DNA of 62,661 bases, filler included, from Choristocarpus tenellus KU-1152 (taxonomy: Eukaryota > Protista > Phaeophyceae): NCBI GenBank assembly GCA_964200185.2. It is 11 parts of 11 records of this genome, joined end to end, with 100 filler letters (N's around TTAATTAATTAA, not from the genome) between each part and the next. Parts side by side here need not be neighbours in the genome. Positions count along the whole stretch, not along the records: positions 52,060 to 56,159 come from CAXNAD020016210.1; 10 more parts are not named here. The stretch is one strand, 5' to 3'. How positions within the stretch are numbered: the first letter of the stretch is position 1; each line of letters starts with the position of its first letter. Positions 49,949 through 56,259 of this stretch are shown piece by piece. The notes beneath the pieces are model-generated. The model searched no databases. It had not been told where the DNA came from and saw only the letters and a program-made list of their open reading frames with translations. The translations under genes were made by a program, and so were the position numbers.

Positions 49949-52203
49949 AGTACGATTTGCACATCCTTAAAATATCATCTCAATACTCCATTGTACTCAG
50001 GATTACCTTTGTGAAGTAAATACTTCGTGATATGAAGCAGTTTCTCTCAGAGTTCGTACAACTCTCTCTCTATCACAAGATGTTCCACACTCTCACATGG
50101 TTTTGATGATGATGAAAGTGGTTGGTAGAGTTTAATGTTAAAAATATTGACAGCAAATTTCAACTCCACCATGCCCATGCCCAACCAAATCCACCCTAGA
50201 TCCAAGTCATACAGACAAACATATATTATTCATTTCAAAATTTCAATGTATTTTTGTTTTCCACCCGTCCACACTCTTTGTCCTGCTTAGTCAATGGGAA
50301 CTATGCAAGGACCACACGTGCAGGAATGATTGGAAGCCATGATCAAGCTACTTGGGTTACCACATATATAAATTACCTGCCCCAATCCACAACCTCTACC
50401 TTGGAAAATATGATATGTTCATACTGTCGAAGGAGATACCTCCTAATCTCAACAATACTCACTGAACCAATGAATATGAGCGAGTGAGACAATATGATCT
50501 ATCTGTGCCCCTTTGCTCCCTGAACCATGCTAGACCAAACAATAAAAATGTCCCCATTCACTTCCCGTCCTTCAAACGTAGCCATCGCAGTGCCAACGTT
50601 TCTGCAAGGGAAAATTCCTTTTTGTCAAGTTCCAGACCTCACTACCCCACCATGCAGGTTTTGCATACATCACGTACACAGTAAACATGACGTGCCAGAC
50701 AAACCAATTATCTAATCTATAAAACTCAGCACTACATGTAGCATTGGCACGACCAACCTATACTCAGAAAACACCAATGGCCTCATGGTGCGGAGTGCCA
50801 AATAGTCCATGGACCACCAATCCCTCCAAAAACGATTAATCCGCTTCCAGGACTATACCTAATCTCTACTTGCTAAACTCCCACAAAATATGTAAGGTAT
50901 ACCCTTGAATTCTCCCAGCATAAGCCCTGGACCTCAAGGTAGTGGACGACCAACAAGACCAAACAAGTGTCTCAAACGGAGGTGCAACATGTTGGCAGTA
51001 ATCTCTCCAGCTTGAAAGGACACACTGTAGCGAAAGTATTGCAAAGATATCATCTCGAATAATTTGTCTACAGACCTCAATCATATCCTGTTGGTTGATG
51101 AGGTACTATTCACACTGTTGTGCCAGGTGTCAAATTCACTACTGTCAACATATGTACTACGCTCCAACCATGCTAAATGTAAAATACTATCAAAGCGACT
51201 CTTGTAATAATTGTAAACTTCGTTTGCTGTCAATATATTCCTTTTTTACCAGATACACAAATCCATAAATCATTTTTATAGACTTTGTTTTACTTCTGTA
51301 TCATATAATTCAACTTTAACGTAATCAACAGGATTTCTCACTGATCCACACCAGGTAGGAAATACCTACATCGTAGAAACATTTCAAATCTGAACAAATA
51401 CTCCTTTAAGTATTGAAAGTGGATATAAGGTATTGACAAGACTAAGGTACAACAAGAGAACCATATATCACACCGAAAAATACAAACAGAAAAAAGTGGG
51501 AAAAATTCCTAAACTTGGTCACAATTCTTTTTTGCAGTATGTATAAAATATTACCATCGATATCTACCTCACCAACACTCCAGCAGACACTAGAGAGAAA
51601 GAAACAAAATCTTACAAAGAACTATATTCAGGACAAATAATGGAATATGATAAAGGGAGAAGACACACTACTTGTCAACAAGGATATACAAGGCCTCCCT
51701 ACGAAATATATCCACAACCTACACACAAAATGTCAAAAGAGAGGGAGGGAGGCTGTGGTTTCAAACATCTTACAAAACATCACACACAAGTAGTGTCACA
51801 CCTGGTGGGTGTTTCAAGTGGACCAGTGGAAAGAAAACCATGAAACCTCGTTTCTAATTTGAATGCAGTTTGTATAATTCCGTAATCACAACCCTAACAA
51901 CATTCAAGGGCTATCACGTGTTAAGAATTTGCTTTTTTATTCATGTGTAAAAGAAGATTNNNNNNNNNNNNNNNNNNNNNNNNNNNNNNNNNNNNNNNNN
52001 NNNTTAATTAATTAANNNNNNNNNNNNNNNNNNNNNNNNNNNNNNNNNNNNNNNNNNNNGGGGGGAGATGGTGCACACAAACAACAGGTCAAAAATTTAT
52101 GGAGTAATATGTCCCCCCCCCCTCCTCGATCATCCGTTATCCACCTGCAGTCCAACAATCTGGAACCAAAGCAAAGTAACTGAGCCATCAACCACCCGCT
52201 GAA

Positions 52204-55199
52204 TCAGTTGCTCTTCTTACAGAGCCCACCATCCACCACAAGATTCTGACCTGTCACAAAGCCTGCGCGTTTTGACAACAGGAATGAAACTGCTGAGGCC
52301 GCATCAGCACCGGTCCCTGCACGACCCAAAGGCGCCACACGCCTGCCACCCTCCTGTGGCACACTCACTGCATTCACCCTCACCATGGGCCCGCAGCTCA
52401 CAGCCTGGGCCTGCGTAAGTGCCACAAGTCCCCCATGTGCTGCTGCCAGCGACTCTGTATTAGGCAATGCCTGGAGTGACACTGTGGAGGTCACATTCAC
52501 CACTGCCCCACCCCCAGCCCCACGTGATGCCTTGAGCCTTGGGAGCGCATGCTTAGCTGCAAGCATTGGCCCTGTTAGCACCTCTGTCAGCACTCCCACC
52601 AGCATTCCTGAGTCAAGTACCTCAAGCTGGCCTTGGGTCCCCATTTGTTGCCCTGGCTTGGATTCAGCACCCGAAGTGTTGCACACCAGCCCATCCATGC
52701 CACCAAATGTGTCCTGGCAAACCTCCACTAACTGACGAAGCCCCTCCTCATCCCCAGGGATGCCTGTATCATGATATATTAGCCGACCCTCCTCCATAGC
52801 GGCGGCAGCTTCAGCTCCTGCAGTCCCATCAAGCAGCCCTGCTACCTCCGCGGCATCCTCACAAGCTCCATCATCTCCAGCAACCACTGAAGCACCATCC
52901 TGTAGGAGACGCCTCAAGATGGCAGGGCCAAAGCCACTCAAGGCCCCTGTGATCGCCACCTTGAACCCAGGCAGAGCCTGAAGAGCCTTCACTGTCTTCT
53001 TCTCCTTTGCCAATTGACTACGGAGTGAATCAATCTCCTGCTGCATCTCTTCTCGAACCTGGCATACGAGGGTTATTTATTATTATCAGTAATAGTAGGA
53101 TTTTCAACAAGGAGCAAAAACATAAAATAAGACCATCATTGTACCTCTAGTTGCCATGTACATTACATTATAACCCTAGCCCTCAAAAACACAGCAACAA
53201 GAAGAATAAACCTACTTGCTGCCAAGCAGAACTTATTTAGACCAAGCAAAAAGGGTGAAATATTACCCTAGGTTGACCCCCCCCCTCCCCCTAAAATGCA
53301 GAGCAAACCCAAAGCACACAACTCCACAACAACTCCACGCAACATCAGAAGGAAAATAAAACATCCACACCAATTTATGAGATACCCACCCCAACGACTA
53401 AAGCAAGAACATGACTACAGGAGACAAGTAACATCAGAAGGCACTATATTCTACACTATATGCACGAGCCACTGCACTGTCAACATCTCCCAAGACTCAC
53501 CTCTGCCAGCTTTGCAGAGAGAGTCTGCTGCGCAAGTCTCTCTTGCTCCTCCTCTGCCCTGCGCTGCTCAGCTTCCAACTCTTGCAATTCCTTCTCCTTG
53601 CGTTTTCGAACCAGTTCTGCCATCTCCCTCCCGACAGTGGCCCGTGTGCGCTCCCCACGATAAAACGACTGCACCTTCACTGCAGCCTTCTTCTTGGTCA
53701 CAAACTTCTTGCGAATTAGCCAACATCTAAGGTTCGTCTGGAGCAATGTGATCGATTGGGAAATCATACTCGTCCTGTCACAGTAACAAGAAAATGGACA
53801 AACGCTTCAGTAAGAACCAGAATCAACTCAAGGGAAAAAAGTTACCGCAGCAGAGTACGCCCAATCCTTACTGTGTCCTTAACTTCCCCTCTGTGATGCT
53901 GTGTGCTTCCACCCTCAACAGCGAGGACATCAACTCCCCCGCATCAGGAGGAAGCAATGGATGATCTTATCTTCTCAGCATAGCGTGCAGGTAATGCAGT
54001 TTTCTTATACTCAAGTTCAACAGCAGTAGAAACTAAACATATACCTTTATCACTTTGGTTGCATCTACAGCGACATACTAGGCGGTACAACACACAACAT
54101 GACCAATGACAACGCAATACTTCGTGAGCATAAAAAAGTAGTAACCCTCCTCCCCCCAATCCATCTTCAAATGAGACTCCGTGTAATACCTGAGGCGCTC
54201 AATGCTGTTAAATGCTTTTTGCTGGAAGAACACCTTGGAGAGCCCCATTTGCATGCCCACCTCACGACACAGATTCTGGAAGTCTGCATCAGTGCAAGAA
54301 GACAGTGCCCCCTTACCCTTCACCTTGCCCAGAATGGAGAACACCAGTGCCTTGCACACTGCCCTTTCAGAGTCCTGGTCAATCTCTCCCCCATCCTACA
54401 ATGCATTCAAAAGTTAGGAAGGCGTTGTCAGGGGGAGTCGACAGGAGGGAGGCGGAAAAGTGAGTGAAATGAATAACTAACTTAGGGCATCAATGTGTGA
54501 GGTGGGCAAAGGGGATGGTGACAACTTATTGAGCATCGCATGATACATGGGTCCAGTGAGGCTTCTTTCAAGAAAATGCCTACTATATCTTTCACGTATA
54601 GACTGCAATTCCAGTCCCTCCAAAGATATTTCCACTCAACAGAAAAACAAAAAAATATGTGCCAAAGAATACCAAACTGATCAACAACTCAATACCTGAA
54701 ATTGCTGTTCATGTAGACATATTTTACTTAGCAAAAGTGCTAAGAGGACAAGAGAGTCTGGGCAGGTGTCAAACACAACTCTCCATCCACCATTTCAACA
54801 TATCTTATACATGCACACTCACACTCATCTAATCCACATAGATGAAGTCAACCACTCCATGCCTAATCACTCTAGCTCAGGACTAAACTCAGTATCGAGC
54901 CCCTTCCCCTAGATCATAACCCCAGCCCCAGGCACCACATCAAAGCTTTGGGTTAAAAATACTTCCATGCCTTTCTCACAAAAACAAAAATGACACAATA
55001 CCATCCCTCAAACTGAAGACACAATACCATCCGGGGTCATGCAGCTCCCACCACAACAGAGTGAAGAGGAGGTGGAGATATCCGGGCAACAAATCAGAGC
55101 AACTTGTGACTTGTTGAATTATCTCCTCACCTGGGCACAATTCCTGTATGCCGTTTCCACCACCAACGGGGCAAGCACTCCATAGCGATCAATGAACTC
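52204..55199 (-). CDS. Myosin heavy chain 3' part (end of motor/converter, 2 IQ, coiled coil) fused to a C-terminal SDR (Rossmann) domain
   Basis: In-phase GT-AG exons 55199-55131 (EFIDRYGVL), 54395-54190 (MQMGLSKVFF), 53774-53501 (LQTNLRCWLIRK, VQSFYRGERTR, charged coil), 53058-52204 (coil, then ITGALSGFG...VRVNAVS...FVTGQNLVVDGG*). Confidence 0.85.
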
Positions 55200-56087
55200 C
55201 TGCAATGACAAGAGCAAAATCAACAATTTCCCATTGAGTGAGAGGGAAAGGAAAGTTGAAAGGCAGGAGGGAGTGGGGTGGGGAGGGCAGTGGCAAGGTC
55301 GAGGAGCTATGCTACGCAAAATATCGTAGTCTTAAAAGAACAAAAACGCAGCCCCTCTCTAGTCCGCATCTCCCTTACCACCCCTTGAATCAACTAAACT
55401 TGGAATCTGATCTAACATGTTCCAAGCACCAACTTCATACACTTTTTCCACCTCCAGTAGAACAGACACAAGAATCAATCAACTACGGAAATAGTACTAA
55501 GAAAGTACAACCCTTGACCAAAGTATATAAAAAAACTCTGCCTGATGCAGTCGTACCACTTGCCAGCACAGGGTGTCGAGAATAACACATAATCCAAGAA
55601 AAAGGTTCACACACGCTTGCTGCTCTATCGCCATTATATAGCTTCCCTTCGAGATGCTACACTCCAATCCTTGTCATCCGTCCTCACCAAAGCGTACTGT
55701 ACCCAACAAGCCCCTGGCATCACAAAACATCTTCCTTGATAAGCAGTATCGAGGGGAGTTATTACAACACTGTAAACACTGTCAATCTACACCACTCCAG
55801 GTTCCAAATTGTGTACTGCTGTAGATCTGTCTCTATCTACCGATTACACATTCGGCTCTTTCACCCTTTCATAAAACTCACAAACACTTCCATCTTCTTC
55901 CTTACGGCAACCTAACCTCACCAAATATATTCCAAAAAATATATATTTCAAGTACCAGTCTCAGACTGTTCCCCACTACTCAACTCGCCATGCCCTCCCT
56001 ACATGCACCACAGGGGGTACGGACAACAGTACCACCAGAACTAAACACAGAAACAACAACACAAAACCGCACAACTAGAACAACCCC

Positions 56088-56124
<37 letters not shown>

Positions 56125-56259
56125 ACCCCCCCCCCCCCCCCCCAACACCCCCCGGCGGGNNNNNNNNNNNNNNNNNNNNNNNNNNNNNNNNNNNNNNNNN
56201 NNNTTAATTAATTAANNNNNNNNNNNNNNNNNNNNNNNNNNNNNNNNNNNNNNNNNNNN

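Follow-up and report, generated by a model that had tools for sequence, protein, structure and literature searches.

The window analysed here is a stretch of 62,661 nucleotides (nt) from the brown alga Choristocarpus tenellus KU-1152, made of 11 parts from 11 records of the assembly GCA_964200185.2, which are joined end to end with filler letters between them. The part examined (positions 52060-56159 of the window, record CAXNAD020016210.1) carries on its minus strand what we read as the 3' end of a brown-algal unconventional myosin gene. Its product would end in a non-catalytic tail of the short-chain dehydrogenase/reductase (SDR) fold that binds a cargo or an adaptor, and we give this reading a probability of about 80%. 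The architecture beneath it, a myosin motor followed by IQ motifs, a helix and the SDR domain, is almost certainly correct. What is new here is that the tail, judged from aligned sequences, is a predicted pseudoenzyme, and that the design is kept from Discosporangium to the kelps.

The spliced gene model was searched one exon at a time, and its features are collected in Table 1. The sequence-only reading of this DNA had proposed four minus-strand exons with GT-AG borders and phases 0, 2 and 0, and all of these are as it had placed them; exon A has AG on its entry side and GT on its exit side in the minus-strand reading. Exon C matched the Pfam family IQ in two stretches (E value 5e-8), which agrees with the two IQ motifs claimed earlier. 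Exon D matched adh_short_C2 with an E value of 8e-27 (94.7 bits vs a gathering cut-off of 27), and also adh_short, above the gathering score, with an E value of 4e-17.

Three public runs of one study from the same organism cover the stretch (X1, X2 and X3). X1 is DNA-like and gives a single colinear contig of 8257 nt at depth 16; X2 is also DNA-like and gives seven short colinear contigs at depths of 5-8; whereas X3 is RNA-like, with depths of about 380-880 over the exons and about 1-18 over the introns. The X3 contigs exactly skip the three introns (53059-53500, 53775-54189 and 54396-55130), each of which reads CT..AC on the plus strand and GT..AG on the gene strand. The joint between exons C and D (53501/53058) had been set beforehand as the refutation test of the sequence-only reading; in the RNA-like contig the two exons meet at precisely this position, so that the test speaks for the reading. 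This contig (X3 record 10; 2503 nt, depth 879) spans 52060-53056 and 53499-53777 with nothing in between, and has at least 255 nt on each side of the joint; the X3 depth of the intron itself is 1.7-2.9. The joint 54395/55131 is also present in an X3 contig, and the joint across 53775-54189 is the weakest of the three, its shorter side being only 26 nt. On the upstream side, the X3 contig exits the piece at 55202 and continues in frame with ...RAGFPVRLGIQ before EFIDRY; we take the pattern ...AGFP.R…EF..RY in this continuation to be the converter signature of myosins. X3 record 14 (3113 nt) carries exon B at its end and has about 2.9 kb more of mRNA upstream of it. On the downstream side, record 10 extends 1227 nt beyond 52060, where the piece has its low end, and this overrun is either a 3' untranslated region (UTR) longer than about 1.3 kb or a neighbour joined by the assembler. 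Position 52116 in the 3' UTR is C in the window and in X3, and T in X1 and X2, a variant among samples of one study.

Exon D finds its closest match in P0002, an annotated Discosporangium mesarthrocarpum protein of 405 residues with 67-70% identity. This single model reads MGLSKVFFQQKAFNSIERLR, followed by the IQ motifs, the charged helix and the SDR domain; it contains the motif MGLSKVFF and carries the same join of exons C and D as the window. The earlier claim that the SDR open reading frame (ORF) is the last exon of the gene, and not a separate gene, is in line with both the X3 contig and P0002. P0002 is without a motor because its contig begins 1989 nt upstream, and the counterparts of exons A and B are readable there. 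Exon A has an identical or almost identical counterpart in Discosporangium and in the contig L003; exon B shares 84% identity with its Discosporangium counterpart (L002) and 73% with that of L003. Further orthologues with 47-58% identity were found in Laminaria digitata, in Sphacelaria rigidula and in about 20 Logan/ENA contigs.

The motor could be followed in these relatives. In L003/L006 (a 1.17-Mb ENA contig), L007 and L008, Myosin_head ORFs are followed by the IQ ORF and then by the SDR ORF, all on one strand. The gene of L003/L006 is readable as a whole, all its exons lying between L006:2213 and L003:10897: it opens with a start Met and an SH3-like N-terminus, its Myosin_head match begins at profile position 1, and it shows the motor motifs GESGAGKT, NSSRFGK, DIFGFE, HYVRTIKPN and AGFPVRLGIQ, and also holds counterparts of exons A to D. 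Four exons of relatives matched Pfam Myosin_head with E values of 7e-25 to 9e-36, one of them from profile position 1. PDB matches of two motor exons favoured none of the classes II, V, X and XI over the others. The first long intron of the L003/L006 gene (about 7 kb; L006:2822-10000) contains an ORF at L003:1388-1828 which looks transposase-like by eye (…RKAFLRYYRMPEETFDKLV…).

A search of exon D against 1.84 billion cluster representatives gave four matches with E<1e-30, all of 405 residues or shorter: two named brown-algal proteins, the window's own protein and one Logan protein. The named ones are brown-algal only, as expected from the earlier suggestion of a lineage-specific myosin; in the searches made, the architecture appears to be restricted to brown algae. 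Since it is conserved from the early-branching Discosporangium to the kelps (Laminaria), the design probably predates the radiation of the brown algae.

The tail was compared with enzymes in alignment A1, which comprises 24 algal tails and the four closest named bacterial SDRs, by counting columns. The tetrad Asn-Ser-Tyr-Lys (with its YxxxK motif), which marks an active classical SDR, is not found in the window. The columns of the catalytic Asn (V160 in the window), Tyr (L204) and Lys (H208) hold the catalytic residue in none of the 24 algal tails, whereas all four bacterial sequences have it. The catalytic Ser (S191) is present in 4/4 bacterial and 2/24 algal sequences, those of the window and Discosporangium; the others have Trp, Cys or Tyr. 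For example, the window segment TESLAAAHGG aligns with TEAYAASKGG of the bacterial proteins, and the HMMER alignment to PDB 5f1p gave the same mapping of Tyr to Leu and Lys to His. Moreover, the PG…T segment (PGxxxT) after strand 6 is replaced in the algal tails by a Gly/Ser-rich low-complexity sequence. Because the tetrad is gone, the tail would not be a classical SDR enzyme, and it is very probably a pseudoenzyme instead of a classical oxidoreductase.

Other parts of the fold are retained. The TGxxxGxG loop (T37-G38-x3-G42-x-G44; TGALSGFG in the window) is present in 22-23 of 23 algal tails, D62 at the end of strand 2 in 23 of 23, and D97 and N127 in all 24; the four bacterial SDRs have each of them. 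The AlphaFold2 model built from A1 (pLDDT, the predicted local distance difference test, 83.6; pTM, the predicted template modelling score, 0.83) shows an N-terminal helix at residues 2-27 (pLDDT 79-97), which is followed by a Rossmann fold. Foldseek placed the exon D model among classical SDRs (E value about 3e-13, template modelling score 0.66-0.79, 25-30% identity). A full SDR fold had been claimed from the DNA, and the Pfam score, the model and the Foldseek match all speak for it. Columns 113-140, 200-240 and 300-330 of A1, which separate conserved SDR blocks, hold Gly/Ala/Ser-rich inserts of highly variable length. In many species these inserts sit in surface loops; they are shortest in the window and Discosporangium. 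Among the best 120 matches of exon D, the named non-algal relatives are all bacterial SDRs (Pseudomonas, Nannocystis, Haliangium and Truepera) with 36-42% identity, and no closer stand-alone algal SDR was found. These bacterial proteins share the C-terminal ending DGG(M/L)SKK with the algal tail. The tail may be of bacterial origin.

The linker between the IQ motifs and the SDR domain was scanned on P0002 with a crude heptad/charge heuristic. In the stretch of about 30 residues that follows the IQ motifs, charged residues make up 60-70% and few a/d positions are hydrophobic, so that the first part of the linker looks like an ER/K-type single helix and not a coiled coil. The last 35-40 residues or so, which run into the SDR exon, have hydrophobic residues at 62-75% of the a/d positions; this suggests a short coiled coil. 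The N-terminal helix of exon D is kept by every one of the 23 orthologues whose sequence extends over it. The sequence-only reading had described the whole linker as a charged coiled coil; its last part with the heptad pattern would fit that description, whereas the first half probably does not.

Could the locus hold two adjacent genes, with chance splice sites linking a myosin to a stand-alone SDR that begins at the Met of MQQEID (53046)? The SDR exon forms an uninterrupted ORF that has an ATG of its own, gene callers give it alone in many contigs, and the annotated Laminaria and Sphacelaria models hold the SDR only, or the SDR with part of the helix. However, these short models are cut by contig edges, and the helix preceding the Met is conserved in frame. 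In the relatives, the SDR exon is always immediately preceded by myosin exons of the same strand; the contig of depth 879 links 53501 to 53058 in frame, and the Discosporangium model has the same exon join. A pair of neighbouring genes is thus barely credible. An active oxidoreductase, carried by the motor to a site of the actin network as in the chitin-synthase myosins, is also highly improbable. The fold is complete, the glycine loop is intact, and the window species and Discosporangium retain the catalytic Ser; but none of the 24 tails has the Tyr, Lys or Asn of the tetrad, 22 of them carry Trp, Cys or Tyr in place of the Ser, and the PGxxxT segment has given way to Gly/Ser-rich sequence.

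Several points weigh against the reading of the gene as a myosin with a non-catalytic SDR tail. The motor is absent from the window, apart from its last two exons. Exons A and B alone had no Pfam match, and exon B alone had no myosin match in PDB. The claimed end of a myosin motor does not stand on these two exons by themselves; it does stand through the relatives, and the window's own letters are called myosin because the 73-84% identical exons of the relatives are colinear with Myosin_head and because X3 continues upstream. Three-frame translations of 55200-56159 revealed no myosin-like frame, so the rest of the motor would lie beyond the contig edge. Both ends of the piece are long G/C homopolymer tracts (56076-56159 and 52060-52135), and reads appear to be cut at 56076-56159; the tracts probably caused the contig break and left the motor on another contig. 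A full-length protein with Myosin_head and SDR was not found with exon D among the 1.84 billion representatives, nor with the 405-residue Discosporangium protein in the range of 223-709 residues; the complete reading frame is therefore not seen as a single sequence in any species. We infer that X3 is RNA from its depths over exons and introns, the kind of run being unrecorded.

The SDR exon might also be one of several alternative last exons, with another tail further downstream in the main isoform. The X3 contig extends 1.2 kb past the piece beyond the stop codon, and contigs are unable to show the shares of isoforms. On the other hand, the highest X3 contig depth falls on the SDR exon, which is conserved, with its stop in the same place, in all orthologues. 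The ratio of nonsynonymous to synonymous substitution rates (dN/dS) of exon D is 0.15-0.17 (window vs Discosporangium vs L003), a rough sign of purifying selection, since dS is saturated. A different main tail is accordingly very unlikely. For the tail itself, the binding of a nucleotide is less secure than the loss of catalysis. In classical SDRs, the residues retained here, among them the glycine loop and the two Asp, bind the adenosine half of NAD(P). The nicotinamide half is held by the Lys and with the help of the PG…T segment that follows strand 6; these two are lost in the algal tails, which counts against nucleotide binding. That the tail binds an adenine dinucleotide is possible and somewhat doubtful. 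The earlier suggestion that the SDR acts as an oligomerisation, cargo or NAD(P)(H)-sensing module is indirectly backed by the combination of a lost tetrad with retained adenosine-site motifs.

Table 1. Features of the gene for the SDR-tailed myosin at 52060-56159 of the window, in window coordinates.
Feature	Position	Strand	Remarks
Intron upstream of exon A	55200-56159	-	cut by contig edge; preceding motor exon outside the piece
Exon A	55199-55131	-	69 nt, 23 codons; EFIDRYGVLAPLVVETAYRNCAQ; converter end of motor; ends in phase 0
Intron A/B	54396-55130	-	735 nt, GT..AG; skipped by X3 contig of depth 382
Exon B	54395-54190	-	206 nt; contains MGLSKVFFQQKAFNSIERL; final part of motor; ends in phase 2
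Intron B/C	53775-54189	-	415 nt, GT..AG; skipped in X3 contig; same join in Discosporangium P0002
Exon C	53774-53501	-	274 nt; ends in phase 0
IQ motif 1	53690-53752	-	ITLLQTNLRCWLIRKKFVTKK; Pfam IQ; borders approximate
IQ motif 2	53630-53689	-	KAAVKVQSFYRGERTRATVG; best Pfam IQ stretch, residues 29-44 of exon C translation
Highly charged helix, ER/K-like	53501-53629	-	REMAELVRKRKEKELQELEAEQRRAEEEQERLAQQTLSAKLAE; end of exon C
Intron C/D	53059-53500	-	442 nt, GT..AG; junction deciding the fusion
Exon D	53058-52204	-	stop codon within
Heptad-pattern helix, start of exon D	52978-53058	-	VREEMQQEIDSLRSQLAKEKKTVKALQ; probably short coiled coil
SDR-fold domain (Rossmann fold)	52207-52968	-	Pfam adh_short_C2, 8e-27
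Stop codon	52204-52206	-	orthologues all end within a few residues of DGGLSKK
Start of 3' UTR	52060-52203	-	covered through by X3 record 10

Myosins with domains of enzyme families are known: class III has an N-terminal kinase, class IX has a RhoGAP tail, and class XVII has a chitin synthase tail. To our knowledge, none of these enzyme-fused classes has an SDR. They resemble the algal protein in that a motor and an IQ lever are fused to an enzyme-family domain in one polypeptide; whereas their domains retain catalytic competence and have no relation to SDRs, and the algal tail, which was met only in brown algae in the searches, lacks the tetrad. Classical SDRs (PDB 3tzq, 5f1p and 2hsd; the bacterial P0028, P0045 and P0053) share 36-43% identity and the same fold with the tail, and the TGxxxGxG loop and a C-terminal GR.G…VTGQ..VVDGG block are common to both. 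The algal tail differs from them in the missing Asn, Tyr, Lys and PG segment, in its Gly/Ala-rich inserts and in its fusion behind a myosin. NmrA and HSCARG/NMRAL1 are SDR-fold, NAD(P)(H)-dependent binding modules without the catalytic Tyr. They are similar to the tail in having a Rossmann SDR fold without this Tyr and in acting by binding, as the tail would; however, they are free-standing regulators and not motor tails, the likeness is at the superfamily level only, and nucleotide binding by the algal tail is only predicted.

Brown-alga-specific orphan myosins outside the 79 classes, common to Ectocarpus siliculosus and Saccharina japonica, have been reported (Kollmar and Mühlhausen 2017, PMC5583752), and the gene described here may be one of them. 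Dehydrogenase, reductase and adh_short are nowhere mentioned in the text and available supplements of PMC5583752 or PMC3942036, which is consistent with the earlier remark that no described myosin class with an SDR tail was known. Short motif searches in the partial supplement of PMC3942036 found no Ectocarpus orthologue. No published account of an SDR-tailed myosin was found in the literature searches, and the word Rossmann was not met in the myosin classification papers that these returned.

The heavy chain would begin with an SH3-like N-terminus and a complete motor, which only the relatives show, and would continue through two IQ motifs, the charged helix and a coiled coil to the SDR domain. 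The IQ motifs might carry calmodulin-like light chains and form a lever together with the charged helix. The short coiled coil could pair two heavy chains, with a possible contribution of the usual SDR dimer interface; the odds that the molecule dimerises appear evenly balanced. The dead SDR domain would form the head of the tail, to which a cargo or an adaptor binds, and a bound dinucleotide might serve it as a structural or regulatory ligand. A bolder proposal is that the protein represents a new, brown-alga-specific myosin class whose dead SDR still binds NAD(P)(H) and ties cargo binding or motor activity to the redox or photosynthetic state of the cell. This proposal is unlikely as it stands; if it were true, a redox-dependent SDR-tailed myosin would directly link metabolism to actin-based transport.

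Myosin classes are largely defined by the binding partners of their tails. As far as the searches reach, a Rossmann-fold pseudoenzyme as a myosin tail is undescribed, and the lineage concerned evolved complex multicellularity independently. Tools for gene tagging and knock-out seem, from the title of a preprint, to exist for Ectocarpus. The SDR-tailed myosin is a candidate for a lineage-specific form of actin-based transport in brown algae, and would be a clear example of how an enzyme fold is taken over for binding.

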